Of a stretch of DNA of 64,000 nucleotides, positions 4,976-33,957 are shown in pieces (position 1 is the first letter of the stretch; each line of letters starts with the position of its first letter). This DNA is from Anolis carolinensis. Lineage: Eukaryota. The DNA is taken from contig NC_085842.1 in the NCBI RefSeq assembly GCF_035594765.1, positions 78,344,782-78,408,781 on the forward strand, in the 5' to 3' direction. Below the pieces are notes generated by a model. That model had not been told where the DNA came from, made no database searches, and saw only the letters and a list, made by a program, of their open reading frames with translations. The translations under genes and the position numbers were made by a program.

Positions 4976-5152
4976 TTTCTTCGTGTACTCTGTGAATGCA
5001 CACTAATGGAGAACGCTGCGCCTGCGCAGGCTCCAACGGATACTCTTCCAAGCTAAAGTTTGAAATTTGGCGGTAACCCCGCCCCTCTCCCCAGAGGGTA
5101 TAAAGGGCGCCCTCCGCGCCCGCTCTCTGGTTCCTTTTTTTCCGCCGCAAAG
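4976..5152 (+). repeat. DIRS left inverted terminal repeat with promoter-like motifs (NRF1-like TGCGCCTGCGCA 5017-5028, GC box ~5078, TATAAA 5099-5104)
   Basis: Reverse complement of 15928-16100 with few differences. Confidence 0.93.
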
Positions 5153-5175
5153 CTCACTTCGGACTCTTCATTCTT

Positions 5176-6489
5176 ATGTCGACCACGCGTTTTAAGCGGT
5201 GCACTCAGTGTGCCGCTAAGATTCCAGATTCCGACGGTCACGCTAAGTGCCTTTTCTGTCTCGGCGAAAGCCACATCGTGGGTACCTGCTGCTTTTGCCT
5301 GGCCTTTACAGCTCAGGCCCGAAGAAATAGAGCTGCGAGACTCCGCGCAGCTCTTTACGAAAAAACTCTTGCTCCTGAGGCTTCTACTTCCACCTCGGCC
5401 TCGATGGTGTCAAGGCCTGCTCCGTCGGTATCATCCAAAACCTCGAAAACTTCAAGACCAAAACCGGCCAAACCGCCCTGCACGGTGACCACCGCTACGG
5501 TTTCCACCCGGTCGGGCAAAATGGGCCCTTCATCGACTTCGAGTTCGGTGGCTTCGGCCATTTCCACTCGATCCCGCCTGGCTTCGCCGCCATCTTCTTC
5601 CGCCATGAAGATTGCCTTCAAGAGGGCTCAGGAGGAATCCAGACGGGCCCAATCTGACTCAGCAGCTGTGTGCCCGATCCCCCCGACGCCGGGAAAATCG
5701 CTGAGGGTCGCGTCGAAGCAACCTCCAGCAAAGAAACGAATGATCCAGAGGTCGTCCTCCTCAGCGTCTTCGAAGAAGGACGTCCCCTCCTCTGTGGCTT
5801 CCTCTAGGAGATCCTCTCTTATCCAACCAGCACAACGCCTCCGCTCCTCTTCCTCTCCTCATGGTCAGTCCTCAGATGCGGACGCTCAAGCCTCCCCCGA
5901 CCGGTCGGTCAGGACAGTTATTAAGGATCCCCAGCCGACACCATCTCGTCTTCCGGCTCGACAAGAACTTTTTCCCCCGGCTCAAACACCCGAGAGGGGT
6001 AGACAGATGACGCGTTTAGCCCGTGCCGCCCAGGCTTCCGCGTCCAAGGGCGTTCGTCCACAGCCGGCTCCCGCTGCTCCTGAGGTGATACCTCATCAGG
6101 ACTCTGCGCATGTTTCTCCTCCCCGGTCCCCTCAAGGGCCCGAGGAGGATGACCCCGATATCGAACACCCCGAGTCGATCCTCTCCGCCTCCGTTGTCTC
6201 TCTCGTTCTCGACCTCTCCCCGCCTCACGACGCCTACGAGGTCGACCCACCTTCCCCGACGGATAATATCCGGGCTTTCTCCGACCAGATGGTCAGAATG
6301 GCAGATGCTCTGGGGATGGAAATTAAGCAAACCTCAAAAGCTGTTACCGACCCCGTTTTCAAGAGGGTCCAAGCCCAAGCCCCCCCAGCCACCTTGCTGC
6401 CTTTTCTTCCATACCTCCTGGACGTAATCCAGGCATCTTGGAAGACTCCATCTTCGATACATCCAACCTCTAAGAAAATAGAGGCCTGA
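5176..6489 (+). CDS. DIRS ORF1 (gag-like), N-terminal part with Cys/His zinc finger; truncated by the L1 insertion
   Basis: FKRCTQC...DGHAKCLFCLGESH...CCFC motif typical of vertebrate DIRS ORF1; the stop is created at the L1 junction. Confidence 0.88.
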   Translation: MSTTRFKRCTQCAAKIPDSDGHAKCLFCLGESHIVGTCCFCLAFTAQARRNRAARLRAALYEKTLAPEASTSTSASMVSRPAPSVSSKTSKTSRPKPAKPPCTVTTATVSTRSGKMGPSSTSSSVASAISTRSRLASPPSSSAMKIAFKRAQEESRRAQSDSAAVCPIPPTPGKSLRVASKQPPAKKRMIQRSSSSASSKKDVPSSVASSRRSSLIQPAQRLRSSSSPHGQSSDADAQASPDRSVRTVIKDPQPTPSRLPARQELFPPAQTPERGRQMTRLARAAQASASKGVRPQPAPAAPEVIPHQDSAHVSPPRSPQGPEEDDPDIEHPESILSASVVSLVLDLSPPHDAYEVDPPSPTDNIRAFSDQMVRMADALGMEIKQTSKAVTDPVFKRVQAQAPPATLLPFLPYLLDVIQASWKTPSSIHPTSKKIEA

Positions 6490-6580
6490 GCCATATACTG
6501 GCGGAGAGTTTGATTCATAATTACAATATAACAATAAAACAACATAGCAAGGAACAAATAATAGTACGTAAGAGAGGAGT

Positions 6581-7648
6581 ATGGCAACTTTCAAGGGAAA
6601 GCTGGATAAAGATTGGAAAGAGCTGAAAACAGGTCAAAGAAGGAACTCGATCCCGGCCCCGGATGAAGTAAACTTGAAAGATCTTTTGAGAGAGATCCAA
6701 CGGGTCTCGGAGAAACAAGACCTGCTACAGAAGGACATTCAAGCCATTGCCAGTAAACAAGACTTGCAACAAAAATTATTTCAAGAAGAACTGACTGAGT
6801 TAAAAAAAGAGCTGAGAGAGGAGATGTACACAATCAAAAGTGAGGTGCAAAAAAACTCAAAGGACATTCTTGAACTGAGAGATGAGAAAGTAAAAGAGGA
6901 AAGAACACGAAGTAAACTACAAAGGAGAGTAGAAGGGATTGAAGCTAAGAATAGTAAATTAGAAAAATTACAGGAAAAGATGGAATTAAACGAAACGGAA
7001 TTCCAACTGAGATTTAGGAATGTCCAGGAAGAGGCTAAGGAGAATATCAGAAGCACCATAATTAGTCTAGTAGCAAAAGCTATGAACAGCAGCGAACAGG
7101 AAACCAGTGCTCAGATTGATAGAGCATATAGAATAAACACGAACTATGCAAAAAAAAATAAAGTGGCTAGGGATGTAATTGTCCATTTCGCAAGAAAAAA
7201 CTATAGAGACGAATTACTGAGGAATAATAAAAGCAATCCAATTATCCACAAAGACCGAAGAGTTGCGGTATTAAAAGAGTTTCCACTATCTATATTAAAC
7301 AGACGTAGGAACTACTTCTTTCTTACGGACGAATTAAAGAGACTGCAAATAAAATTCCGGTGGGAGAAATACGAGGGGATTATGGTGACCTACAATGGTG
7401 AAAAAAATTGGATTACTTCTGAAGAGAAGGCAGACGAGTTTTACCGAAAATTGAAGAAAGATTTATCCCAAAAGAAACAACTGGAATCGGCAGAAAAGGA
7501 AAAAAATCCCAAGGACACAAAAAAAAGAAGATTCGACTCTCCCAAAGAAGCTGAGGAGCTATTGATCCAGTTTTCAAAGGACAAAGAGACTGAGGACTTA
7601 TCGGATAGCGTGGAGGAAGTAGAAGAGGAGATAGCGGCAAATGAATGA
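6581..7648 (+). CDS. L1 ORF1p (coiled coil, RRM and CTD; 355 aa)
   Basis: Heptad-rich N-terminus; LRFRNVQEE, IDRAYRI and RDVIVHF motifs of L1 ORF1. Confidence 0.93.
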   Translation: MATFKGKLDKDWKELKTGQRRNSIPAPDEVNLKDLLREIQRVSEKQDLLQKDIQAIASKQDLQQKLFQEELTELKKELREEMYTIKSEVQKNSKDILELRDEKVKEERTRSKLQRRVEGIEAKNSKLEKLQEKMELNETEFQLRFRNVQEEAKENIRSTIISLVAKAMNSSEQETSAQIDRAYRINTNYAKKNKVARDVIVHFARKNYRDELLRNNKSNPIIHKDRRVAVLKEFPLSILNRRRNYFFLTDELKRLQIKFRWEKYEGIMVTYNGEKNWITSEEKADEFYRKLKKDLSQKKQLESAEKEKNPKDTKKRRFDSPKEAEELLIQFSKDKETEDLSDSVEEVEEEIAANE

Positions 7649-10600
7649 TTTTAACCAATCAATAAAGGTTTTCTCAAACAACATCAACGGTCTGAATGCG
7701 CCCACAAAGAGAAAAAGGGTATATAATTATCTAAAAAAGAATAACTTTGATGTAATTGCTTTACAAGAAGTGCACATCAAACAAAGCCAGGCCAAATATT
7801 TGTTTAATGACAACCTGGGAAAGTTATACCACTCTCTAGACCGGGAGAAGAAGAAAAAAGGAGTGGCCCTGTATATTAACAATAAATTAAATCCATCTTT
7901 AGAATTTAAAGATAATGAGGGTAGAATAGTAGCAGCGAAAATTGAATCAAATTCAGAAACAATTTTAATTTGTAATATTTATGCACCTAACGGGCCAAAA
8001 AGAAAGTTTGTCAAAAATTTAAGAAACCATATTAGGGAGAGTGATTTTAATCACATTATTATAATGGGGGACTTCAATGGTATATTGGAAAAAAACAGAG
8101 ATAAAAAAGCACATAAAAAGACCATAACAAACAACATGTTACCACAGAATTTTATAGATCTAAAGAATGAATATGACCTCCACGATTCGTGGAGATTGAG
8201 AAACCCCACCCAATTAGATTATACATTCTATTCAAGTCGTCACAACTCGTGGTCAAGAATCGACATGATTTGGGTGTCTAAATTGTTAACCACTAAAATA
8301 AATAAGGTAGAAATTATGGCTAGAGATTTATCTGATCACGGTGCTATGTTAATGGAAATCAATAAGAAAAAAATAAATTTGAAATGGAGATTAGACGATA
8401 ATTTAATTAAAAGAGAAGAGGACATCGTTAAAATTAGGCAAATGACGAAAGAATATTTTAAATTTAATAATATTCAAGAGTCTGACCCACTAATTATATG
8501 GGACGCATACAAGGCAGTGGCCAGAGGGTTCTTTATTCAGCAAAAGAAGTTGAAAACGAGAACGAAAAAGGAGAATTTAAAAAGATTACAAATTCAAATA
8601 GAGCAAAAGGAAAAAGCACTTAAAGCGAATCCGGGTAACAATAAAATAAACCAGCAGTTGACCATTTTTAGGAACCAGAAAAAAAACCTCGAATTAGATA
8701 ACTTAGCAAACCAGATAAAGTGGGCAAAGCAATATTCATTTGAAAACGCTAACAAGCCTGGAAAGTGGCTTGCTAGATTATTAAGGAAGAAAAGGTATAG
8801 TCAACAAGTACTAAAAATTAATTCGCAAGGGAGAACAGTGTATACTGATGAGGAAATAAAGGAAGAATTTAAAAAGTATTATGAGCAACTGTACGAAAAG
8901 GAAGGGATCAGCCAGGAGGAAATAGTAAAATATTTATGCAAGCAAAAATTGCAAAAGATAACAGATGAGCAACGATTAGACTTAAATAAAGCAATAACAC
9001 CCGAAGAAGTGAAAGAAGCGATAAAAGAAACAGAAGCAAACAAAGCGCCCGGATTAGACGGGTTTATAGCTGGGTTTTACAAAATTGAACAGGAGGAGGT
9101 TATTGCACATTTGGTGCAAATAATGAATTTGGTCTTAACAGAAAGTATTATCCCAAAAACGTGGAGTGAAGCGGAGATAATAATGATCCATAAGGAAGGG
9201 AAAGATCAAAGTGATGTTAAAAATTATCGACCAATAGCGCTGCTAAATACGGATTACAAACTCTTTACAAAAATTATGGCAAAAAGATTATCAAAATTTT
9301 TAAACAATTGGATCGCAGACGACCAGTCAGGCTTCTTACCAAACCGCAGCACAAAAGATAACATCAGGATAATAATTGACGCAATTGAATATTACGAGTA
9401 TAATCACCAAAAGACAGTAGGCTTTCTCGCACTAGATGCTGAGAAAGCTTTTGACCAGTTGAATTGGGATTTCATAAAATTGCTATTACGAGAATTAGAT
9501 ATGGGGGCACAGTTTCAAAATACTATAAATGCTATATATACCCAGCAAGGAGCTATCATTAGAGTAAACGGTCAGACGTCGGGAAAATTCAATATTAATA
9601 GAGGAGCTAGACAGGGCTGTCCACTCTCGCCGTTGATTTTCATAATGACCCTAGAAATTTTATTGCGTTCCATAAGGGAAGATAGCAAGTTAGTAGGAAT
9701 TAAAGTAGATAGTCAGGAAATAAAAGCCAGAGCATTCGCGGATGATGTAATCTGCATAATAGAAAACCCTAGGGATAATACAAGAATTTGGCTAAATAAA
9801 ATTGAAGAATTTGGAAAATTGGCAGGGTTCAAAATTAATAAAGACAAATCAGTAATGTTGACAAAGAATCTGACATCACAGGACTTGGAAATAATAAAGA
9901 AAGAAACGGGACTCCAATTTGCAAACAAAATTAAATATTTAGGCATCTGGATTGCGTCAAAAAATAATCGCTTGCTGGAACTTAATTACGTGAGGAAATG
10001 GAAAGAAATAAAAAAAGATCTGGAGGAATGGAAAAATTTAAAAATATCTCTGTTAGGCAGAATAGCGACAGTAAAAATGTCAGTCCTTCCAAAGATGCTG
10101 TACTTATTCAGGAACATTCCCATAATAAGGAACAATCAAATATTCAACAATTGGAATAAAGACATAAGAAAATTTGTGTGGAACAATAAAAGACCCAGGA
10201 TCAAGCTCTCGACGATGCTAACTCCCAAAGAAAGAGGGGGACTTGATTTGCCAGACCTCAAATTATACCACGAGGCCTGTGCTTTAGATTGGATTAGAGA
10301 TTGGGCGAACTTAAAAAAAGCGAAAATTTTATCATTAGAAGGCTATAATTTAAGAAGGGGCTGGCATGGGTATTTATGGTATGGTAAACATAAAATTGAA
10401 AGGAATTTTGGTAATCATTTTGTGAGATCGGCGCTACTAAAAACTTGGACTAAGTATAAAAGATTTTTCTATGAAAAGACTCCGCTGTGGCTCTCGCCGT
10501 TAGAAGCATATCAGAGACGAGAATTAGGGTGGATATCCTGGCCAACGTATAAGGAGGTGTTAAACTGGTCAAACAGGAATGGATTACCAGAGATAAAGAA

Positions 10601-11393
10601 GTTAGAAGAAATTCAAATCAAATATAAGAATATATCATGGCTACATTATTACCAATTAAGAGATTGTTTTAGGGCTGATAAAAAACAAGGTTTTAGTCCA
10701 TCTGATGAGTTTTGGGATATTATTTTACAAAGAGAGAAAAAGGTATTAACTAATTTATACAATAAATTAGTGGAGTGGAACACGGAAAAGGAAGTAATAA
10801 AGGAATCAATGCTAAAATGGTCAAGAGATATAAACAGGCCAATTCTACTAAATGAATGGGAGGCGATTTGGAATAAGAAAATCAAATACTGCCGGGCCAC
10901 TGACCTCAAGGAAAACTGGATTAAAATCATTCATAGGTGGTACCTGACACCTAAAAAAATTGCCTTAATGTATAACAATATTGATAACAAATGTTGGAGG
11001 TGTAAAGAGCAGGTGGGGTCTTACTTCCACATGTGGTGGAGCTGTAAAAAAGTTAAAAAGTTCTGGTCTATAATTAACGTGGAAAGTAGGAAAATTCTGA
11101 AAATAAATTTGGAATGCAAACCTGAATACTATTTATTAGGGCTATACAATATCTTCGAAAATGAGAATAAAGTAGAAGCGAAAAACAAGGAGAATTTAGA
11201 TAAAATTTATACTTATTTAATAACGGCTGCGAGACTGGTAATTGCCAAAGATTGGAAGAATGCAGAAACCCCTACGAGAGAGATGTGGCTAAACAAAGTC
11301 ATGGATATTAAGAACATGGACAAGTTAACTTTTTTGATTGAAACGGACTGGACACTATTTGAAGACTATGTAGAAGAAGAGCTAAGAAGATGA
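7641..11393 (+). CDS. L1 ORF2p (APE endonuclease, reverse transcriptase, CCHC domain; 1250 aa)
   Basis: NINGLN, LQEVH, NIYAPN, GDFN and SDH (EN); YRPIALLN, DAEKAFD, QGCPLSP and FADD (RT); CWRC...HMWWSC. Confidence 0.96.
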   Translation: MNDFNQSIKVFSNNINGLNAPTKRKRVYNYLKKNNFDVIALQEVHIKQSQAKYLFNDNLGKLYHSLDREKKKKGVALYINNKLNPSLEFKDNEGRIVAAKIESNSETILICNIYAPNGPKRKFVKNLRNHIRESDFNHIIIMGDFNGILEKNRDKKAHKKTITNNMLPQNFIDLKNEYDLHDSWRLRNPTQLDYTFYSSRHNSWSRIDMIWVSKLLTTKINKVEIMARDLSDHGAMLMEINKKKINLKWRLDDNLIKREEDIVKIRQMTKEYFKFNNIQESDPLIIWDAYKAVARGFFIQQKKLKTRTKKENLKRLQIQIEQKEKALKANPGNNKINQQLTIFRNQKKNLELDNLANQIKWAKQYSFENANKPGKWLARLLRKKRYSQQVLKINSQGRTVYTDEEIKEEFKKYYEQLYEKEGISQEEIVKYLCKQKLQKITDEQRLDLNKAITPEEVKEAIKETEANKAPGLDGFIAGFYKIEQEEVIAHLVQIMNLVLTESIIPKTWSEAEIIMIHKEGKDQSDVKNYRPIALLNTDYKLFTKIMAKRLSKFLNNWIADDQSGFLPNRSTKDNIRIIIDAIEYYEYNHQKTVGFLALDAEKAFDQLNWDFIKLLLRELDMGAQFQNTINAIYTQQGAIIRVNGQTSGKFNINRGARQGCPLSPLIFIMTLEILLRSIREDSKLVGIKVDSQEIKARAFADDVICIIENPRDNTRIWLNKIEEFGKLAGFKINKDKSVMLTKNLTSQDLEIIKKETGLQFANKIKYLGIWIASKNNRLLELNYVRKWKEIKKDLEEWKNLKISLLGRIATVKMSVLPKMLYLFRNIPIIRNNQIFNNWNKDIRKFVWNNKRPRIKLSTMLTPKERGGLDLPDLKLYHEACALDWIRDWANLKKAKILSLEGYNLRRGWHGYLWYGKHKIERNFGNHFVRSALLKTWTKYKRFFYEKTPLWLSPLEAYQRRELGWISWPTYKEVLNWSNRNGLPEIKKLEEIQIKYKNISWLHYYQLRDCFRADKKQGFSPSDEFWDIILQREKKVLTNLYNKLVEWNTEKEVIKESMLKWSRDINRPILLNEWEAIWNKKIKYCRATDLKENWIKIIHRWYLTPKKIALMYNNIDNKCWRCKEQVGSYFHMWWSCKKVKKFWSIINVESRKILKINLECKPEYYLLGLYNIFENENKVEAKNKENLDKIYTYLITAARLVIAKDWKNAETPTREMWLNKVMDIKNMDKLTFLIETDWTLFEDYVEEELRR

Positions 11394-11659
11394 ATTAAAC
11401 AGGAAGACTAACAGAAGATAGTAGAGCGGAGGTCCATCCCCCTCCCCTTCCCCACCCCACTCTAAGGGCCCTTTACCTATTATTTTCCCTTTCCCTCCCC
11501 ACAGGTCTGGTCTCCCCACGCACTACCCACCCCTTCCCCTCCCCTCCCTTAATTCCCTGTCCCATAACCTACCTCTCCACCCACCTTTTCCCTTAGACGA
11601 TAAGTGTTATCTGGAAATTCTTTAATAAAGATCATTTAAAAAAAGAAAATAGAGGCCTG

Positions 11660-12404
11660 GTACCGAACCGATGACGAAGCCTTGGAATGGCTCAAGCATC
11701 ACCCTGACCCAAACTCCATGGTGGTAAAGGCCTCCCAATCGTCGGGTCGACAGTCCAACTCCCCTGCCGACAGGGAAGGTAAACGATTCGATGCGGTAGG
11801 CCGCAAGCTGTACTCCGGCGTTCTCCTCCTTTGCCGTATGGCGAACTACGGGGCCTGCATGGGCGCTTATCAACAGATCCTCAGGGGAAAAGCCCAACCT
11901 TTCTTCGCCAAACTTTCTGACGAAGACCGGTCAGTCCTTTCGACCCTCCAACAGGAGGCGGACTCCCTCGCACACCACCAAATTCAAATGGCTAAACATA
12001 CCGGTGATACCGCCGGAAAAATGATTGCCCACGCAGTCGCGATCAGACGGCATGCATGGCTTCGGTCCTCAGGACTCTCTTCTTCCTCTCAACAAGTGAT
12101 CGAAGACCTTCCTTTCGACACCCAGGGCCTTTTCAATTCTGGTACTGATGACAAACTGAAGTCCAATCACGACTTCAAGATTCTCGCAACAAAGTGCGGG
12201 ACCGATCAACCTCAGACTCAGCGGACCCGATGGTTCCCGCAACGGTACCGTCGCTACCCTCAGCCTTTTCGTCACCAGCCGTTTCGACGCTCGTCGAGCT
12301 CGAGTCACCACAGTCATCAGCAACAACCTCGCCGCCAGCACCAGGTTCCGAAAGGTCGGGGCAAGGGTGCTGCAGCTATGCCACAACCCCAACGACGGGC
12401 CTGA
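11660..12404 (+). CDS. DIRS ORF1 (gag-like, LAP2alpha-related domain), C-terminal part
   Basis: Removing the L1 and one TSD copy gives ...SKKIEAWYRTDDEALEWLKHHP... in frame (685 aa in total); RRHAWLRSS and DLPFD motifs. Confidence 0.88.
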
Positions 12405-13948
12405 CGCCCACTCTCTCTCTTTTCTACCTTCACTGCTACTGCCACTGCCATGCCGTTCCTAGGCCCCGACCAGATCCTTCCTCTCTGCTCTTTCCTCGAT
12501 CGCCTAGCTCCTTTCTACCGCGAATGGGAGTCTATAACCTCAGATGCCTGGGTTCTTCGCATTGTCAGAGACGGCTATGCCTTGGAATTCGAAACTTTGC
12601 CCCCCACGGGTCACATCCTCCACACCGACCCTTCACCGGAAATATGCTCCGAGGTCGACTCCCTTCTGGCGAAGGGCGCAATCCAGCCTTCTCCTTCCGA
12701 GCAGGACACTCAAGGTTTCTTCTCGAGATACTTTACGGTTCCCAAACGGGGCGGAGTTCTTCGGCCTATCCTCGACCTGCGAGCCCTAAACCTCTTCATT
12801 CTGCCTTCAAAATTTCGAATGGTCTCGGTGGCCTCCATTCTCCCGATGCTCCGACACGGAGACTACTTTGCCTCTATAGACTTACGCGATGCGTATTTCC
12901 ACGTCTCGGTGCGTCGATCCCACAGACGCTTCCTTTCCTTCAAGCTCCTGGGACAGTCTTACCAGTTCACAGTTCTCCCTTTCAGCCTCGTCACGGCCCC
13001 AAGGGTCTTTACGAAGGTGGTCGCCGTGGTGGCAGCGCACCTCAGAAAACAGGGCATAATGGTCTTTCCTTATCTGGACGATTGGATGATTGTCGCGTCC
13101 GACCCCTCATCCCTTCAAAACCACGTCTCTCAAGCTCTTTCTCTTCTACAACGGCTGGGCCTTCAGTTGAATGTCTCAAAGTCCCAACTCCTCCCGACCA
13201 CAGAGATCCGCTTCATCGGAGCTCTCTTCAACTCCATCGCGGAAACCGCCTCCCTACCGAAGGACAGGTTCCTAGCCCTTCAACAACACCTTTCTCTCCT
13301 CCTCCGCAACCGCAGGATCCGAGCCCACTCTGTCCAAGTTCTTCTGGGTCACATGGCCTCCACGGTCATGGTTACTCCTTTCGCCAGACTACATCTCAGA
13401 CCTCTCCAAAGATGGTTTATAGACTCTTTCAAACCCCATCGGCATCCGAGCTCAATGTTTCTCACGGTACCGAACCAGGTTCGCCTCTCCCTTCGTTGGT
13501 GGCAGGACCCAGCGAACGTTTGTGTGGGACTTCCCTTCCATCCCTCCCTCCCGTCAGTCACCATCACGACCGACGCCTCCAATTTTGCGTGGGGAGCCCA
13601 CATGTCAAACCTCACCGTCAGGGACCTTTGGTCCATCCAAGAGAAGTCTCACCACATAAACTTTCTAGAACTGTTATCAATCTTCAAAGCCCTCCGGGCG
13701 TTTGCTCGCTTTCTTCCCCACAAGACTGTTCTGATACAAACGGACAATGTAGTAGCTATGTACTACATCAACAAACAAGGGGGTACGGGCTCGAGAAAAC
13801 TGATGACTCTCTCGATGGACATTTGGCTATGGTGCATAGCGAGACACATAACCCTGTCGGCGGTTCACCTTCCGGGGGCTCAAAACACGCTAGCAGACTC
13901 TCTAAGCAGAATAACAACCTCCCCCCACGAGTGGCGTCTCGATCCTGA
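12194..13948 (+). CDS. DIRS overlapping alternative-frame ORF, inferred N-terminal extension of the YR ORF (first ATG at 12230)
   Basis: 584 stop-free codons in the -1 frame over RT; same frame relation as YR to the methylase domain after the frameshift. Confidence 0.65.
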   Translation: MRDRSTSDSADPMVPATVPSLPSAFSSPAVSTLVELESPQSSATTSPPAPGSERSGQGCCSYATTPTTGLTPTLSLFYLHCYCHCHAVPRPRPDPSSLLFPRSPSSFLPRMGVYNLRCLGSSHCQRRLCLGIRNFAPHGSHPPHRPFTGNMLRGRLPSGEGRNPAFSFRAGHSRFLLEILYGSQTGRSSSAYPRPASPKPLHSAFKISNGLGGLHSPDAPTRRLLCLYRLTRCVFPRLGASIPQTLPFLQAPGTVLPVHSSPFQPRHGPKGLYEGGRRGGSAPQKTGHNGLSLSGRLDDCRVRPLIPSKPRLSSSFSSTTAGPSVECLKVPTPPDHRDPLHRSSLQLHRGNRLPTEGQVPSPSTTPFSPPPQPQDPSPLCPSSSGSHGLHGHGYSFRQTTSQTSPKMVYRLFQTPSASELNVSHGTEPGSPLPSLVAGPSERLCGTSLPSLPPVSHHHDRRLQFCVGSPHVKPHRQGPLVHPREVSPHKLSRTVINLQSPPGVCSLSSPQDCSDTNGQCSSYVLHQQTRGYGLEKTDDSLDGHLAMVHSETHNPVGGSPSGGSKHASRLSKQNNNLPPRVASRS

Positions 13949-15368
13949 AATCCGTCTTCGACGATTGGGGCTGGCCAGCTCTGGACCTTTTTGCCTCCCC
14001 CTCGAACGCTCAACTTCCTCGCTTCGGAGCAAGACTACCTCCAAACTCGACTCCGGGCTGTCTCGGAGACGCGTTTCTCCTCGACTGGACCCTCGAGCCC
14101 GTCTATCTTTTTCCTCCCTTCCCTCTCATCTCGAGGGTAATAGAGAGAGACTATCTAACGCCAACATCGACCATCCTGATCGCCCCTGCATGGCCACGCC
14201 AGCCGTGGTACCCAACTCTACTCCGGATGTGTGCGGATCCTCCCCGCACTCTCCCAACTCTCCCTCATCTACTATCTTCACAGAAGGGACAGGTCCTCCA
14301 CCCCGACATCCCGTCCCTACACCTGACTGCCTGGAGGATACTTCCTTAAATTCTCTCCACCCAGACCTGCAGGCGATCCTTCGTGCCGCCCATAAGCCAG
14401 CCACGTCAAGGGCCTATGCTTACAAGCTTGCAAAATTCCAAACTTTCCTTCGGGACCGACACGTCGATCCCGCCTCTACTTCGATCCCGCTGGTCCTGGA
14501 CTTCCTACTTTCTCTTGCAGATCGTCAACTCTCTCTGGCCTCGATAAAATCCTATCTCGCTGCTCTCTCCTGGCATTTCCAACGTCAGAGACAACCCTCT
14601 CTCTTTTCTAACAACCTCATTAAGACCTTTCTTCGAGGTTACAACAACCTGCACCCTCCAGTTCAACCTCCGACTCCCGGATGGAGCCTCGAACTCGTCC
14701 TTTCTCAACTAGCTTCAGCTCCCTTTGAACCTATGGCCTCTGCAGACCTTCACCTTCTCTCTTGGAAGACTGCCTTCCTAATCACTATCACCTCTGCGTG
14801 CAGGTCTTCGGAACTGGCTGCTCTTCGGGTGGACGAACCCTACCTCCGTTTCCACCACGACAGGGCTGTTCTTCGCCCGGACATCACCTTCCTACCTAAG
14901 GTGGTCTCTGCTTTTCACCTTAACCAGGACATAATACTTCCTGCTTTCTTTCCTAATCCTTCTTCTTCTTTGGAGCGGAGACTTCATCTCCTGGATGTCA
15001 GGAGAGCCCTCCTTTTCTACAAAGACAGGACTAAGGACATACGTAAGTCACCTAGACTGTTTGTGGCTTACGCTACCCATAAGCTGGGCGAACCACTTTC
15101 TTCTCAAAGACTCTCACACTGGATTGCTCAGACTATCGAACTCGCTTACCAGCTGGCTAAACGCCAACCCCCCTCTTCGATCCGCCCTAGATCAACGAGG
15201 GGCCTTTCCACCTCTACTGCCTTCCTGAGGGGCGTCCCTCTCGACTCCATCTGTCGAGCGGCTATCTGGTCCACTCCATCCACCTTTGTTTCACACTACA
15301 GGATGGACTCAAAGAACCTCAAGGACTCGGCCTTTGCCAGGTCTATCCTTTCCTCCTGCCTTGCCTAA
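12450..15368 (+). CDS. DIRS RT-RNaseH read in frame into the tyrosine recombinase (972 aa; fusion caused by a frameshift near 13945)
   Basis: RPILDLR, SIDLRDAYFH, LPFSL and YLDD (RT); TDAS/ELL/QTDN/ADSLSR (RNaseH); RSSEL, FLPKV, RSTR, W and HY (YR). Confidence 0.9.
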   Translation: MPFLGPDQILPLCSFLDRLAPFYREWESITSDAWVLRIVRDGYALEFETLPPTGHILHTDPSPEICSEVDSLLAKGAIQPSPSEQDTQGFFSRYFTVPKRGGVLRPILDLRALNLFILPSKFRMVSVASILPMLRHGDYFASIDLRDAYFHVSVRRSHRRFLSFKLLGQSYQFTVLPFSLVTAPRVFTKVVAVVAAHLRKQGIMVFPYLDDWMIVASDPSSLQNHVSQALSLLQRLGLQLNVSKSQLLPTTEIRFIGALFNSIAETASLPKDRFLALQQHLSLLLRNRRIRAHSVQVLLGHMASTVMVTPFARLHLRPLQRWFIDSFKPHRHPSSMFLTVPNQVRLSLRWWQDPANVCVGLPFHPSLPSVTITTDASNFAWGAHMSNLTVRDLWSIQEKSHHINFLELLSIFKALRAFARFLPHKTVLIQTDNVVAMYYINKQGGTGSRKLMTLSMDIWLWCIARHITLSAVHLPGAQNTLADSLSRITTSPHEWRLDPEIRLRRLGLASSGPFCLPLERSTSSLRSKTTSKLDSGLSRRRVSPRLDPRARLSFSSLPSHLEGNRERLSNANIDHPDRPCMATPAVVPNSTPDVCGSSPHSPNSPSSTIFTEGTGPPPRHPVPTPDCLEDTSLNSLHPDLQAILRAAHKPATSRAYAYKLAKFQTFLRDRHVDPASTSIPLVLDFLLSLADRQLSLASIKSYLAALSWHFQRQRQPSLFSNNLIKTFLRGYNNLHPPVQPPTPGWSLELVLSQLASAPFEPMASADLHLLSWKTAFLITITSACRSSELAALRVDEPYLRFHHDRAVLRPDITFLPKVVSAFHLNQDIILPAFFPNPSSSLERRLHLLDVRRALLFYKDRTKDIRKSPRLFVAYATHKLGEPLSSQRLSHWIAQTIELAYQLAKRQPPSSIRPRSTRGLSTSTAFLRGVPLDSICRAAIWSTPSTFVSHYRMDSKNLKDSAFARSILSSCLA
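13945..14349 (+). pseudogene. DIRS DNA N6-adenine methylase-like domain, out of frame with RT
   Basis: Manual translation: LKSVFDDWGWPALDLFASPSNAQLPRF...DAFLLDW...YLFPPFPLISRV...ILIAPAWPRQPWYP...LHPDIPSLHLTAWRILP*. Confidence 0.85.
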
Positions 15369-15784
15369 CGTTGTTGCCTTACTCAAAACCAGTTTTTTTT
15401 GGTTATCCTTCTTACAAGCTGACCGCTGTCATTCAGCCTTTATGTACACGATATGTTCATGGGTTCATTAACGTAGTGCTTGTGTACTATACTTACCCAC
15501 TACACTGAAATGTATTTCATGAATACCTCTACCTCTGTTTTCAGGAAATGGGTCTATACTTACCTCTGTATTTTCTTACAGACTATCGCTCACATACAAT
15601 GTTGTGATTGTGTTCTGGGTCCTAATAACAAGGATCGGTTTTTTTGCACTATATGCTGTTGCATCGTTTTCTTTGACTGTTGCACTTGCTTGTTTTTGCA
15701 CCTTGTGCTCAATAAATGTGTTGTTTGGACACTAGACTGGTTATCGGGTTTGCTATCCCACCTACCTACACCTCAGCTTGCTAG

Positions 15785-15879
15785 TCTCCATTAGTGTGCA
15801 TTCACAGAGTACACGAAGAAAAAGGACAGGTTGCTTATCTGTAACCGTGTTTCTTCGAGTGTACTCTGTGAATTCACAC
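15785..15879 (+). repeat. DIRS internal complementary region (ICR)
   Basis: 15785-15823 is complementary to the 5' end (4974-5012); 15824-15879 is complementary to the 3' end (16071-16126) with one mismatch. Confidence 0.93.
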
Positions 15880-15927
15880 AATCCCGCCCTTCCTTCCCCA
15901 CATGCAAACCTCTCCCTTTCTCGCTGC

Positions 15928-16130
15928 CTTTGCGGCGTAGGAACTGGAGAGCGGACGCGGAGGGCGCCCTTTATACCCTCTGGGGAGAGGAGCGGGGTTA
16001 CCGCCAAATTTCAAACTTTAGCTTGGAAGAGTATCCGTTGGAGCCTGCGCAGGCGCAGCGTTCTCCATTAGTGTGAATTCACAGAGTACACTCGAAGAAA
16101 CACGGTTACAGGTAAGCAACCTGTCCGTTT
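15928..16130 (-). repeat. DIRS right inverted terminal repeat plus ~30-nt 3' extension ending in TTT
   Basis: Inverted copy of the left ITR; extension 16101-16130 matches the right half of the ICR. Confidence 0.93.
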
Positions 16131-23760: not shown

Positions 23761-23819
23761 TCATCTTCCTTCCAAGTTCTCATGTTGTCTCTCAGACTGC
23801 TTTCTGCGGTAAACATCAT
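23761..23819 (-). CDS. SMIM4: SMIM4/UQCC5 last coding exon (YDVYRRKQSERQHENLEGR*)
   Basis: Minus-strand ttttacag acceptor at 23820-23821; matches recalled YDVYRRKASERQY; TGA at 23761-23763. Confidence 0.9.
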
Positions 23820-24912
23820 CTGTAAAACAATTTGTGATTATTTTTGAAGGTGCCGTGAAGAAGTTTTCTTTAAATGTAAATTTTGTTACTTAAGACAGCT
23901 AGCTTACATCTGTACAAAGATTATGTTTAATATAATCAACTGAGTTTATTCAAAAGACTATTTTGAATACTGGGGTAGTGGATAAACAATATTCATGCCA
24001 GTTTCCTTCTGTGGAAAGAATGAAACATATTCTTCTAACCCTGATAAATTTTGACATCAATTTCACATAATTTGATTTTGCTTAGTGTGAGACCTCCCAC
24101 TTGAGTTGGAGATCACCTGTACTGATTTCAGTCTCTCCCTAAAATGAAGGGCATATTTGACTTCATGAGAAGTTGTACTTTAGCAAAACTGGTGAAACCT
24201 AGTTCAGAGGAGAGAACAGGACAAAATTCTCTGTTTGAAAAATGAATGTGGATCTACTAGGTAGTGATCCGTCTCTGGATGACTGCTGCAAGATGTGAGA
24301 GATACAGAACGCCCCATATTGCAAAGATAAGACCAAACATTCTGAAATTATCTAACCTTCAGTTCCAGCATACCATCAAATAGCCCTGAAGAATCTAGAA
24401 ATTCCTAGTGAGATAAATTGTCTAGGAATTTCCTAGGTAATCCAGATCAAGTCTAACTTCTAGGGGATCATACCACAGAATCATCTGGATGTCCTAGCAA
24501 ATTACTAGGGAAACCATTTTCCTTTGGATATAGGTTCTGGAATTATGAGGTCAACTTTGAAGATACATTCAAGTGCCCAGAAAATGTCTGTTGCTGTGAG
24601 CCATCAACTTCTATCTTACCTATTGGTCAAAGTCCTGAAACTCCACTGAAGTTTTCACTGACAATTATATCTGCAAAAATCAGGAAGTGCAACTGAAACC
24701 AGTTGATTCTGCTAGAAGGTTCAGAAATGTTTGATAGCATTAATCATGGAGTCTTTAGTGAACCATGTACTTAAAGTGATTGCTCATTACCTTTCATATT
24801 ATATTATTAAGAAATGGTGCCTGAAAACAAGCATGAAGCCCTTCTAAAGAACAGTGTAAAATACTGGAGAAAAAATATGGCAGTATATTTGAAAGCTTTT
24901 TACAATACTTAC

Positions 24913-25063
24913 AAAAAGTCTCTTTGCCGATACGAACATTGATCATAAACCATTCCATAGCACCTCCAAGAAGAAAGAAGAAAGGGAGAAATCTATAAAT
25001 GCCAAAGCGCTGCTTTCCAGGCACCATATACAATAGCCGCTTTATTCTATGGCTGATGTGCAT
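24913..25063 (-). CDS. SMIM4: SMIM4/UQCC5 first coding exon (MHISHRIKRLLYMVPGKQRFGIYRFLPFFFLLGGAMEWFMINVRIGKETF)
   Basis: Diagnostic VPGKQRFGIYRFLPFFF.LGG.MEW motif; GTAAGT donor at 24907-24912. Confidence 0.93.
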
Positions 25064-28389: not shown

Positions 28390-28726
28390 CACAAAAGGTT
28401 TATTTACAAAAATAATTACATTTCTTAATAGTAAAGAACTGGGTCTGAGCTACTCTAACTAACCCCATCTCTTCTAGGGTTCAAAAGAGAGGGAAAACCC
28501 ACCAAGCACTACATCTCTCCTGCCACATAAGCAAAGAGAGATCTCAATACATACAGCACATACCACGAAGTAAAAGTAGAAGTCAAAGACAAAAGGCATG
28601 CACCTGCAAAGTATCTACATACCAAGGTGGCTACATAACCAATCAGAATGGGAGTAGAATCAGAAATAGATACATTCTAATAGTCATTTAGGCGACACAG
28701 GGGAAAGGATATCCCTCAGCCCATTC

Positions 28727-28861
28727 CAGTGGTCCTCAATTTGTGGGTCCCCAGATGATTTGGCCTTCAACTCCCAGGAATCCTAACAGCTGATAAATTG
28801 ACTGGGATTTCTGGGAGTTGTAGGCCAAAATACCTGGGGACCCACAGGTTGGAAAACAATG
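28727..28861. mobile_element. hAT-type MITE (degenerate)
   Basis: CAGTGG termini; 8-bp TSD GCC(C/T)ATTC; same family as 31375-31509. Confidence 0.7.
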
Positions 28862-29269
28862 GCCTATTCTAAGCTAACTAACTCTTCCTCATTGAGAACT
28901 GCAGACTTGGGTAGTGTGGGGTTTAACTCCAGAAATTATTAGAGAGAAATTAGGGGCGACCCTTGTCCTTTTGACAAGGACAAAATAATAGGAAAGAATC
29001 TAGAACAGGCATGGGCAAACCGGCTGTCAGGAATTGTGGGAGTTAAAGTCCAAAAAACTTGGGAGGGCCAAAGTTTGCCCTGCCTGGCCTAGGCAATAAC
29101 TGGCACTGGTATTGTCGCTGGCCCTTCAATCACTTTGGACTGCGACTCCCACAGTCCTCTACCACTGGCAAAGGCGGCAGGGGATTCTGGGGGCTGAAGT
29201 CCAGAGACGACTAAGCACACTCAGCGCGTGCTCAACAACCGCTCACAACCCAACCCTTCCCGTCCTGAA

Positions 29270-29808
29270 TGCAGCCAATCAGGGGGCGCGGAAGAAGGCG
29301 CGAGCCCCCTCGCTCACCTCGGAAGCCAAAGGAGAAAGAAGGCCGGCGCAGAAGGCTGAACCAGGCGCAATGGAAGACCTTCACCTTGCTCCGCCCCTAG
29401 TTAAGGCAACAGCTTCATCTGATTGGCTGCTGTCTTGGAGGCGTGGCCTAGGCAGCGCTTGGGGAGGAAACGGAAATGAACAAGGAGTCTTTCGTGAGGG
29501 GAAGAACGCTTTTTAGCGAGAGGGAGTATTGATGTATAGAGATGTACAGAGATATTGTGATTGGTCGAGACCAGTGATTCCTTTGAGCCTTAGGAGTTCC
29601 GGACTTCAACTCCCAGAAGCCCCAGACCGCTTAGACAAGGGAGAGGAATTTGGGGGGTTGAAGTCCAAAACAGCTGGAGGGCCAAGGGTTGAATATCATC
29701 CGCGGGGGTGAGGCGTTATGTCGTCACATCCGGCAGTAGCGAAGTCTTTGGTTTCCTTGGAAACCCTCGAGAGGAGAAATGGGCAGCTCTGGCTAGGCCC
29801 CCTCCGCC
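29270..29808. promoter_or_regulatory. CpG-rich, probably bidirectional promoter (SMIM4 non-coding exon 1 on -, PSME3 retrogene on +)
   Basis: CCAAT boxes at ~29275, 29422 and 29560; GC box 29391-29396; minus-strand GTGAG donor at 29313-29317; ETS/CRE-like motifs near 29720-29733. Confidence 0.6.
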
Positions 29809-30552
29809 ATGGCTTCCCTCCTCAAAGTGACCCCGGAGGTTAAGATGGCGGTAGACTCTTTCAGGGAGCGAATCACAGGAGAAGCCGAAGAGCTCGTCGC
29901 GCATTTTTTCCCGAAGAAGTTTTTAGAACTGGATGCTTTCCTTCAGGATCCGACTCTGAACTTTCGCGATCTCAGCCAAATCCACTCAGATGTGAGCTAC
30001 CCTGTTCCCATCCTGCTGGGGCCAAACAGCCCTGCAGGGCCCAGTCTGAAAAAGAGGAAACTGGAAGGCAACTTGCAAGGCACCAGAGTCCTTGTGGTGC
30101 CTCAAGGGATGCCGAAGAGCAACCAGAAGCTGGTGGACATCCTGGAGAAGGTGAAACCCGAGATACGGCTGCTGATGGAGAAGTGCAACGTGGTCAAACT
30201 GTGGGTGCAGCTCTCCATTCCCAAGATAGAAGGCGGCAACAGCTTTGGGGTTTCTGTTCAGGAGGACACTGTGGCCGAGCTCCAAACTGTGGAGAGCGAG
30301 GCAGCGCTGCACCTGGACGAGATCGCGAGATACTACACCGCGCGGGCAAAGCTGGTTTCCAAAATAGCTAAATACCCTCACGTGGAGGACTACCGTCGCA
30401 CAGTAACCGAGATGGACGAAAAGGGATATATCTGTCTGAGGCTCCTCATTTTGGAGCTGAGAAATCAATACGTGCTTCTCCATGACATGATCCTAAAGAA
30501 TATTGAGAAAATCAAGCAGCCCCAGAGCAGTGAGGTAGAGGCTCTCTACTGA
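29809..30552 (+). CDS. PSME3: Intronless PSME3-like (PA28gamma/REGgamma) proteasome activator retrogene, 247 aa, intact
   Basis: MASLLKV...DSFRERIT...FFPKK...KVKPEIRLL...RAKLVSKIAKYPHVEDYRR...LHDMILKNIEKIK; strong Kozak CCGCCATGG; single exon, so a paralog rather than the multi-exon ortholog. Confidence 0.92.
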   Translation: MASLLKVTPEVKMAVDSFRERITGEAEELVAHFFPKKFLELDAFLQDPTLNFRDLSQIHSDVSYPVPILLGPNSPAGPSLKKRKLEGNLQGTRVLVVPQGMPKSNQKLVDILEKVKPEIRLLMEKCNVVKLWVQLSIPKIEGGNSFGVSVQEDTVAELQTVESEAALHLDEIARYYTARAKLVSKIAKYPHVEDYRRTVTEMDEKGYICLRLLILELRNQYVLLHDMILKNIEKIKQPQSSEVEALY

Positions 30553-30778
30553 TCAATGAACTGTTCAGTAGACTCAGTTACAGCCTTTGCCTAAATTTAT
30601 GGGACTACCAAGTCTGAAAAAGCTGGCAGGAAACAGTCCTCATCACACTTTAGTTAAACGTCTACAGAAACACATTCCTAGTGCTTTCTGGTTGGTTTTT
30701 ATTTGGGTGTTGGGGTTTGTCCCTCTCACTCATATTTTAACATGTGGAAGGTATGCCTCAGAGCTTCTTTTCCTACTT

Positions 30779-31058
30779 TTTTAAAAAAAAACATACGAAA
30801 GCAATTTGAGAACATACTGTAAGTCGCTTCTGGTGTGAGAGAATTGGCTGTCTACAAAGAAGTTGCCCAGGGGATGTCTGGATGTGTTACCATCCTAGTG
30901 GGAGGCTTCTCTTCTGTCCCTGCAAACTATAGCTGACAGATGGGAACTCACCCCATCTCACAGATTTGAACTGGCAACCTTCAGGTCAACAACCAAACCT
31001 TCAGGTCAGCAGCCCACCCAGCACAAAGCTTTAACCCATTGCACCACTGCAGCTCCTC
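30779..31058 (-). mobile_element. tRNA-derived SINE downstream of the PSME3 retrogene
   Basis: 12-bp TSD CTTTTCCTACTT at 30767-30778 and 31059-31070; tRNA-like head on the minus strand. Confidence 0.7.
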
Positions 31059-31374
31059 CTTTTCCTACTTAGGTGGGGATAACACAGTGGCTGATTTGAT
31101 TCAGGAGGCAATAATTTCCAGTTCCAGCAGTCCTGAATGCCTACTTGCCTGGATGAATGCTCCCTTCTTAGAGTACACCTACACTGTAGAATAAATGTAG
31201 TTTGGCACCACTTTAGGTGACATGGCTCAATGCTATGGAATTATGGGAATTATAGTTTTATAAGGCTTTAGCTCCCTGCCAAATAGGACAGGTGCCTCAC
31301 CAAACTAAAAATCCCATGATTTCATAGCATTGAATCAAGGAGGTTAAACTGATGTCAAACAACACCACTTAGAT

Positions 31375-31509
31375 CAGTGGTTCTCAACCTGGGGTCCCCA
31401 GATGTTTTTGGCCTACAATTCCCAGAAATCCCAGCCAGTTTACCAGCTGTTAGGATTTCTGGAAGTTGAAGGCCAAAAACATCAGGGGATCCCAGGTTGA
31501 GAACCACTG
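31375..31509. mobile_element. hAT-type MITE
   Basis: TIR CAGTGGTTCTCAACCTGGG; perfect 8-bp TSD ACTTAGAT. Confidence 0.88.
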
Positions 31510-31526
31510 ACTTAGATGCAGCTTAT

Positions 31527-31647
31527 GGGCCCTTCCAGACAGGCCCTATATCCTAGGATCTGATCCTAGGTTTTCTGCTTTAAACTGGATCATATGAGTC
31601 CCCACTGGGATCAGATCCTAGGATATAGAGCCTGTCTGGAATGGCCC
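31527..31647. mobile_element. Palindromic MITE (PIF/Harbinger-like)
   Basis: Long TIR GGGCCCTTCCAGACAGGC.CTATATCCTAGGATCTGATCC; superfamily assignment is tentative. Confidence 0.6.
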
Positions 31648-32369
31648 TACGTTTCCCCTTGACTGTTCAGCAATATCCCTAATCTTTTTGACTATTAGCT
31701 CCTCTCGTCCATTTGTCCCATTGTGCTTTTAGGTTCTCATCCATCTTCACTTTTCTACAGAATGAATTAAAGTTCACAAAATGTGTAACTGCTTTGTCTT
31801 TATACAAGGCACAAGTTTTGTTATTAGCTTTATTTGGCATCAGTATTGGACGAGGATTATTTCTGATTATTTATTGATCACCTTATGCGGCACCACACTC
31901 CTAAATAAATAAACTCAGAGAAAAAACTGACCAACGAGAATAACTGTTTTGTTCTTTTACGTGCAGGGCTCCATGCACAGATGTACAGGGATGGTGCTAG
32001 ACAACTAGATGAGATGGAGATTATTATAGTAATTTACTCTCCCAGGGAAGCGTGTCTAGGATGACAGCAGGCGCTCTTGAGCATAAATATGCATGATACC
32101 AAACCAATGTGACACTTCCCCCCCCCCCCCCCCCGCCGCCGCCGCCTTTCTCAGTGAAAATGACAAACAGGAGTGCAAGTGAACAGACATCTCCTATTAA
32201 AACCTAATTCTTGAGGCAGATAAAAACAACAACTAGCCCTAAAAAAGAATACGCAGTGGACACATTGAGCGGAATTAATTCCAGCTCGCTGTAAATCCCA
32301 ATTGCGGTTGACATCAATTTCCCCGCAAAACCATCGCAGTCTGGGAGCGGGAAACATCAAAGCAGTAAA

Positions 32370-32860
32370 CAGAGAAGCCATTGCAATCCACAAGCGTGTG
32401 GACACTTAAAACAGAAAGGAGGAAACCATGAAAATGAACAAAATCTGGCTACTGGTATTTAAAAACTCTAAAATCAGGACAGTGAATAAAGAACAACACT
32501 CAGAAAACGGGAATTCCAGACAAGAAACAATCAGAGCCAGTTAGCAACTCCCTACAAAGGTTTCTCTCAAGTAGGAATCAGCCAGGCCTTGAAGCTGCAA
32601 GGCTTTTCAGTGCTAATTAAGGTGATCAACTGCAACATTCACACTTGCCTCAGGCAAACAAGTGTTCTTTCTACGTCCCACCCTGGACCTTCCACGGATA
32701 TATTAACCTCCCTTGCCTAGTTTCCAATATACCTCACAACTTCTGATGATGCCTGCCATAAATGTGGGCAAAACGTCAGGAGATAATGCTTCTGGAACAT
32801 GGCCATACAGTCCAGAAAACTCTCAACCTAGTAATTCCGGCCATGAAAACTTCGACAACA
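32370..32860 (+). mobile_element. Penelope-like element 3' fragment
   Basis: REAI.IHK.V...NRKEETMKMNKIWL GIY-YIG-end remnant, then a terminal repeat ending GGCCATGAAAACTTCGACAACA. Confidence 0.78.
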
Positions 32861-33416: not shown

Positions 33417-33759
33417 ATGGCGGCCGTCGGGCTCAAGGCTGCGAGGGGCGGCGGCGGCGGCGGCATGTGGTGGAAGAAGGGCGGTGGGTCTGGCAGCCTC
33501 CAGCTGGTGGCCTCCTCCTCCTCCTGCCCGGGCTCCGGCAGCAGAGGCAGCGGGGGTCAGGCCAAGGCCAAGGCTCACCAGCAACCCCCGCTTTCCCCGC
33601 CCTCCGTCAGCGGCGGCAGGGCCAAGCGGGCGGCCGAGCCCAGCCGAGGAGCAGCCTCTCCGCCTTTGGGAAACCAGCCCCAGCCCGGCCCCATCGAGGG
33701 AGTCGACACCAAGGGCTACCTCTGGGCTAGGTACCACGAGATGAAGAAGCTGGTTCACG
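33417..33759 (+). CDS. NT5DC2: NT5DC2 exon 1 (Gly/Ser-rich N-terminus...YLWARYHEMKKLVH)
   Basis: GCCATGG start; LWARY.EMK.LVH motif; GT at 33760. Confidence 0.88.
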
Positions 33760-33957
33760 GTAATGAACATCATAGTAGTAGTGGTGGTGGTGGTGGTAAT
33801 AGAGAGGAAGGAAAGAAAAGACCCTGTTTCTTTCAGGGCCCTTTCCGTTGTGGCCTCTCGCCGTGCAGCCCATCCCAGTTGTGGTTAATTCCAGGGCTTT
33901 TAGTACAGAATTTTTAAATCAGTCACAAAGGCGTCCAATGTATGAACAACTCTTTTG

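Follow-up and report, generated by a model that had tools for sequence, protein, structure and literature searches.

The activation loop of PA28 proteins is near-invariant and required for activation (PMC10526260, PMC7915322); PA28 loop mutants bind, yet do not activate (PMC7854634), and the PA28γ mutant N151Y is inhibitory to the wild type (PMC7662426). PA28α and PA28β, whose loop is almost identical to that of PA28γ (PMC10526260), and tunicate PSMEb, PSMEc and PSMEd are fast but ancient offshoots of a slow PSME3-type gene (PMC4453063). Mouse Psme2b, in the account of Zaiss and Kloetzel (1999) given in PMC2413143, is an intronless PA28β retrogene that is expressed from a LINE1 promoter. Borrowing of a promoter by head-to-head placement is a known route for retrogenes (PMC4772013), and retrogenes are common in anoles, with about 136 estimated (PMC3136929). 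Both PA28 retrogenes, such as Psme2b, and fast PSME3 offshoots are already known.

An intronless copy of PSME3 is located in the window studied here, i.e. the whole stretch of 64,000 nt of Anolis carolinensis DNA, from chr2, that was analysed. As compared with its parent, PA28γ (REGγ, PSME3; PDB 7YQC and 7YQD), it has in common the four-helix fold, N151, K188/K192/K195, P245, Y254 and, in A. carolinensis, a basic NLS-like cluster. It differs in being intronless and 24–27% diverged, whereas vertebrate PSME3 orthologues differ by few residues, and in an insert that is 7 aa shorter and the changes D149G, N152S, R244Q, R246Q and K14A. Like Psme2b, as far as that account goes, it is an expressed retrocopy of an 11S subunit gene beside an apparently borrowed nearby promoter; Psme2b, however, derives from PSME2 and is LINE1-driven, and the anole copy derives from PSME3, adjoins a host-gene promoter and has a long protein divergence. 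Promoter-piggybacking retrogenes (PMC4772013) likewise lie <2 kb from a neighbour's promoter in divergent orientation, but the anole copy also retains a parent-derived 5' motif. Its altered loop sets it apart from PA28α/β, and it shares an altered loop and a kept docking tail with the engineered mutants PA28γ N151Y and PA28α N146Y (PMC7662426, PMC7854634), except that N151 is kept and the flanking D149 and N152 are altered. No 11S paralogue with such a loop, and nothing relevant on an Anolis PSME3 copy, was found in the literature searched.

Organisation and retroposition of the locus

The copy and its synteny neighbours occupy the following window positions.

23761 to 25063, minus strand: SMIM4/UQCC5 coding exons, synteny neighbour (gene records)
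29712 to 29808, plus strand: parent-derived 5' segment (5'UTR), defined by homology; a parent contig starts at 29715
29809 to 30552, plus strand: single-exon PSME3-derived ORF, 247 aa (translation, Pfam, parent exon mapping, intact A. sagrei orthologue)
30553 to 31140, plus strand: parent-derived 3'UTR, ~300 nt of homology, split by a later insertion
30779 to 31055, no strand assigned: carolinensis-only repeat insertion in the 3'UTR, with a 15-bp TSD at 30764–30778 and 31056–31070; holds an A9 run
33417 to 33760, plus strand: first coding exon of NT5DC2, with a separate CpG island; synteny neighbour (gene records)

Translation of 29809–30552 gave 247 aa followed by TGA with no stop or frameshift, and the start codon has a Kozak context (CCGCC-ATG-G), as described in the initial annotation, which was made from the sequence alone. 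The product includes the Pfam domains PA28_N and PA28_C. Its top ordinary BLASTP matches were bird and reptile PSME3 (73% identity), and identity with squamate PSME3 was 75–76% in a MAFFT alignment, close to the ~70% that had been estimated by eye. Human PA28γ was the top PDB match both by sequence and by fold, and a monomer model (pLDDT 83, with disorder confined to the insert and the last residues) matched its four-helix fold with TM 0.97 and rmsd 1.2 Å. The gene order is PBRM1 (+), SMIM4/UQCC5 (−), PSME3-like ORF (+) and NT5DC2 (+), in agreement with the location between SMIM4 and NT5DC2 given before. The identical protein is annotated in A. carolinensis GCA_035594765.1 CM069368.1, where the sequence of the locus equals that of the window, and the locus has already been annotated automatically as PSME3-like. 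In the neighbouring PBRM1 intron (5000–16100), a DIRS-type element with ORFs at 5176–6489, 11682–12404, 12194–13948 and 12450–15368, whose translations are RT/RNase H/recombinase-like, is split by an intact L1 (ORF1 6581–7648, ORF2 7641–11393); this block is missing from the A. sagrei alignment.

Exon-by-exon mapping revealed 11 coding exons in each of the PSME3 parents of skink, snake and lacertid, and the anole copy is contiguous across 10 of 10 parental intron positions in all three, which bears out its description as an intronless retrocopy. Homology to the parent is limited to the mRNA, from ~95 nt upstream of the ATG to ~300 nt into the 3'UTR, and ends well before the first poly(A) signal of the skink parent at +1400. 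A spliced parent-type contig from anole runs starts at 29715, the same place as the 5' homology of the copy; hence the copy is 5'-complete. Within its 5' segment, an out-of-frame, overlapping uATG lies at 29718 and a 5-codon uORF at 29779. The snake parent adjoins BECN1, so that the site between SMIM4 and NT5DC2 is an unlinked locus. These data showed that, on the anole lineage, a 5'-complete PSME3 mRNA was retroposed beside the CpG-island promoter of SMIM4.

Neither a poly(A) tail nor a TSD of the retrocopy was found at the locus, as noted earlier, and their lack is expected because such marks decay at the age of the copy. The A9 run at 30783 was rejected as the retrocopy tail, as it marks the edge of the later insertion, which has a 15-bp TSD of its own. 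Just 3' of the retrocopy (31196–31647) lie three palindromic MITE-like elements side by side, with arms of 71, 58 and 43 nt, which may have removed the tail and TSD that the copy once had.

Distribution, age and selection

The SMIM4 neighbourhood was compared in A. sagrei, Sceloporus, Varanus, Candoia and Podarcis, all of which show the NT5DC2-SMIM4-PBRM1 arrangement. By tblastn, the copy was located in A. sagrei at the equal site and in equal orientation, full length and intact (L004:6220-5477), and was not found at the syntenic locus of the other four squamates. This distribution indicates an insertion on the anole lineage after its split from Sceloporus (unless Sceloporus lost the copy) and before A. 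carolinensis and A. sagrei diverged, an interval of very approximately 80–45 million years ago. The copy is thus lineage-specific, as had been proposed, in a narrow sense: two Anolis species share the site. A squamate-wide ancient retrogene was rejected, as no orthologue was found in protein and representative searches or at any of the four syntenic loci. A second A. sagrei version of the copy is recorded as 'PSME3-like' (XP_060621851.1) and differs from the first at 8 of 247 residues; the gene list of the rAnoSag1 assembly has no gene called at the site. Podarcis raffonei has an extra SMIM4-like gene (P0194) on a different chromosome.

Sphaerodactylus townsendi likewise has an intact intronless PSME3-like copy (XP_048361175.1), which lies within a PDZ-LIM gene (L002:10001-11660). 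It was rejected as an orthologue on its different locus, its lack of insert deletions and its canonical loop, with D149, N152 and R246 kept. Third-position trees of the gecko and anole copies were unresolved (supports 34–69); the gecko copy is most likely a separate retroposition, and a shared source would be compatible with these trees. Changed sites common to both copies number 17, as compared with 9.7 expected (p=0.003), five of them carrying identical derived residues, and shared tolerance of sites would also give this overlap. The 3' end of the gecko copy is tandemly duplicated downstream (335 nt, 93% identity), which accounts for an odd 319-aa UniRef model (P0002). In the pit viper Protobothrops, a second, slightly diverged PSME3 model (XP_015683581.1, P0092) stands beside the canonical one.

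Between the two anoles, dN is 0.058–0.063 and dS 0.18–0.22. The dN/dS ratio is 0.27–0.35 by four methods (bootstrap 0.16–0.45; Fisher p=6e-7), with 0.19 in the C-terminal domain and 0.44 in the insert. No indel separates the two copies in 744 nt, as compared with ~15 expected, and the flanking DNA (intronic, UTR and intergenic) shows 0.018–0.025 indels per base between these species; hence the intact frame is not due to chance. On a neutral expectation, the probability of both lineages being stop-free is 0.01–0.05 and that of being frameshift-free 7e-6, rising to 0.05 when the indel rate is set to one quarter. Pairs of PSME3 parents gave a dN/dS of about 0.02–0.03, and thus the constraint on the copy is ~15-fold relaxed. 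The copy is therefore under real but relaxed purifying constraint. Selection on the open frame, as suggested in the initial annotation, stands, though the constraint is much weaker than in the parent (~0.3 vs 0.02); the disrupted orthologues with dN/dS near 1 that would have spoken against it were not seen, the A. sagrei orthologue being intact and dN/dS well below 1.

Between the copy and the Anolis parent, dS is about 0.32–0.47 and dN/dS about 0.25–0.42 by difference counts in contigs, a ratio that is approximate, as it assumes the Anolis parent protein to be as in other squamates. As a local neutral yardstick, dS of the neighbours is 0.08–0.11 (from hand-set exons, the SMIM4 exon-2 frame being wrong over 15 of 211 codons) and introns give 0.10–0.12; dS of the copy is ~2-fold higher. 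Because a dN of 0.06 is about half the local neutral rate of 0.08–0.12, constraint may be weaker than dN/dS suggests. Stem dN is about 0.09; a burst of positive selection on the stem is not supported by this value or by the overall dN/dS of ~0.3 vs the parent. Changes on the stem lean from AT to GC (24 vs 11 nonsynonymous, 12 vs 8 synonymous), much of which is explained by site composition. Candidates for this lean, together with the raised synonymous divergence, are turnover of CpGs and GC-biased conversion at the promoter island.

Seven replacements at conserved sites are private to the rAnoSag1 allele, and three of them lie in adjacent codons. They inflate dN/dS and hint at slackening in A. 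sagrei. In its codons 162–165 (window 30292–30303), four base changes in 11 nt give the three adjacent replacements. This cluster is possibly one template-switch event, as the changes create a short inverted repeat with downstream sequence.

Transcription and promoter

Elements relevant to expression are as follows.

29242 to 29463, minus strand: promoter and first exon of SMIM4, a block also conserved in Sceloporus, with a splice donor after 29318, a GC box at 29391–29396 and CCAAT at 29422–29426
29571 to 29692, no strand assigned: short MITE-like palindromic repeat that separates the SMIM4 promoter from the retrocopy 5' end (sequence comparison)
29712 to 29733, plus strand: GC/CRE/ETS-like motif, candidate inherited promoter element, common to the PSME3 5' end in skink, lacertid and snakes (by eye)
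31190 to 31195, plus strand: candidate polyadenylation signal (AATAAA); in two runs, contigs of low depth stop at 31241–31251

Fourteen presumed RNA runs from five studies, with two of the runs large enough for DNA, include 64–96% of the words of 29400–31300. In three small runs from three studies, one contig each covers the full ORF (29318–30848, 29344–30636 and 29435–30835); these contigs are unstranded and differ from the window at 0–3 positions. The same three runs leave unique DNA at 31750–32285 nearly empty (contigs over 28400–32400), and all three also contain a spliced full-length PSME3-type parent contig. The runs thus fit RNA, and the transcription called for in the initial annotation is supported. 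The copy as the only PSME3 in the genome, named there as a ground for refutation, was rejected, as the spliced parent transcript is present. The Anolis parent is known here from transcripts, its protein not being among the cluster members listed. A further run, from a different organism, gave the canonical PSME3 contig only. Contig depths for copy/parent (152/126, 57/44 and 106/190) are of the same order and cannot rank the genes, in runs that were picked for containing the copy. Within the carolinensis-only insertion (30779–31055) contig depth falls ~tenfold. The only coding variant among those listed for three carolinensis samples is synonymous (30276), and none is disabling.

One contig ends exactly at the SMIM4 first-exon donor (29318), and the copy starts ~400 nt away, head-to-head. 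Its 5' end is within a CpG-rich island (o/e 0.55–0.72 vs 0.39 in the whole window). The SMIM4 block is a probable shared bidirectional promoter, and, as judged by motifs, it and the inherited parental 5' motif may both contribute. A start near 29435 would place five uATGs in the leader, and a start at the inherited motif one or two. In A. sagrei, the SMIM4/retrogene promoter has a ~104-nt tandem duplication (L004:6578-6800) that multiplies the CCAAT box, and a second donor-like site is also present.

The locus is thus very probably a protein-coding retrogene that is expressed, under some selection and moderately constrained. It is highly improbable that the ORF RNA is an antisense SMIM4 leader extension or other non-coding transcription, with the locus acting, if at all, as RNA or DNA: the contigs are unstranded and a single contig in one run spans from the SMIM4 exon-1 donor (29318) to 30848, but selection follows the plus-strand reading frame, SMIM4 has its own conserved promoter at 29242–29463, and the contig of another run begins at 29435, with coverage fading just past the plus-strand AATAAA.

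Residue changes and predicted function

The protein regions discussed below are encoded at the following positions.

29998 to 30093, plus strand: homolog-specific insert, 7 aa shorter, about half of its residues changed (alignment; region defined in PMC7662426)
30220 to 30252, plus strand: activation loop with R146K, D149G and N152S, N151 kept (alignment, conservation counts)
30514 to 30549, plus strand: C-terminal 20S-docking tail with R244Q, R246Q and N249E, P245 and terminal Y254 kept (alignment)

Residues are numbered as in human PA28γ, and conservation was derived from 138 vertebrate PSME3 and 144 distant PA28s, the pooled column counts including a few mammal-like protein matches (e.g. 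P0005, P0104). K14, a modification site, is replaced (K14A), and T23, K6 and K195 are kept. Outside the insert, ~40 replacements are common to both anoles. Sites conserved deeply among eukaryotic PA28s were changed in 5 of 61 cases vs 47 of 175 other sites (p=0.002), and none of the 48 core deep sites has a rare residue. All three rare-state changes (D149G, N152S, R246Q) fall within 13 loop and tail sites (p=0.008–0.024), an enrichment that is post hoc, having been tested after it was noticed, and rests on three changes. D149 and N152 are invariant in the 138 vertebrate PSME3 and 92–93% conserved in the distant PA28s; the range for the three altered 20S-facing residues is 81–93%. The loop is accordingly not canonical, with E148, G150 and N151 retained. 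Among the 144 distant homologues, five have D149G, and residue 149 changed once more in A. sagrei, where one haplotype has A in place of G. The more diverged gecko copy keeps D149, N152 and R246; hence a tendency of these sites to drift first does not by itself explain their changes.

Seven residues are missing through three deletions (97 nucleotides in the parent transcript vs 76 in the copy); as the initial annotation had it, the deletions are in frame and lie in the insert. A basic NLS-like KKRK at 30049–30060 in A. carolinensis is EKRK (K85E) in A. sagrei. Residues 186–212 are unchanged, including K195 and the γ-type pore lysines K188/K192, whose role is described in PMC9287138.

'Activator' is the least certain word of the earlier claim, as the loop and tail are altered at near-invariant residues. 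The explanation preferred here, tentatively and at somewhat less than an even chance, is a PA28γ-type subunit that would assemble, dock and activate weakly, and so damp or retune the parent. Its protein is predicted to fold as a PA28γ subunit, to enter heptamers alone or mixed with the product of the parent, and to dock on the 20S α ring via the retained P245/Y254 tail. Activation would be transmitted poorly, as D149G and N152S may loosen the loop and R244Q/R246Q alter the tail. The job of the copy would be to dilute or retune nuclear PA28γ-20S activity, and the target of selection would be the helical core with the pore lysines and not the loop. The N151Y and N146Y mutants serve as a model for this role. 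Against damping, the residues best documented as essential (N151 and the terminal Y) and E148/G150 are retained; a leader with perhaps as many as five uATGs, the D149G of some distant homologues and a dN of about half the local neutral rate also count against it. A natural inhibitory 11S subunit, which would join PA28γ or occupy the 20S α ring without activating, like engineered N151Y, is unlikely. No natural PA28 paralogue with an inhibitory role is known to us, and none was found in the literature searched.

Retention of N151, E148, G150 and Y254, together with K188, K192, K195, P245 and T23, would suit a working 11S activator that tolerates or compensates for its loop changes, either a tissue-restricted back-up (e.g. 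in testis) or one with shifted peptide specificity. In the independent gecko copy, changes in helix 3 are found at matching sites, within the overlap given above. PA28γ is important in spermatogenesis (PMC7915322), young retrogenes are often testis-expressed (PMC4772013), and in both vertebrates and tunicates new activators arose as fast-evolving offshoots of PSME3 (PMC4453063). Three changes at conserved 20S-facing residues, which the gecko copy avoided despite its greater divergence, make a working activator rather doubtful.

A decaying duplicate would be expressed via the active CpG-island promoter under weak selection, e.g. against misfolded or poisonous subunits, and GC-biased fixation, with no distinct job. 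The ~15-fold relaxation, the private changes of rAnoSag1 and the differences between the A. sagrei versions, the lack of a called gene in rAnoSag1, K85E in the NLS and the stem AT-to-GC lean, itself largely site composition, would fit such decay. However, no branch carries a stop or frameshift, the three deletions are in frame and all within the disordered insert, the core deep sites are untouched and no disabling variant is listed for the carolinensis samples, so that decay is considered improbable.

The importance of the weakly activating subunit proposed here is limited in that the copy is taxonomically narrow, already annotated automatically and maybe weakly constrained. PSME3, on the other hand, barely changes in vertebrates, and no part of the 11S family is more conserved than the activation loop. 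As a young, expressed copy under selection, with loop and tail altered and the core kept, the anole gene is a natural experiment on the activation of 20S by PA28γ, for which gate opening and allosteric activation of the trypsin-like activity are still debated, and it bears on the origin of new PA28 paralogues, the step from which PA28α/β once arose.
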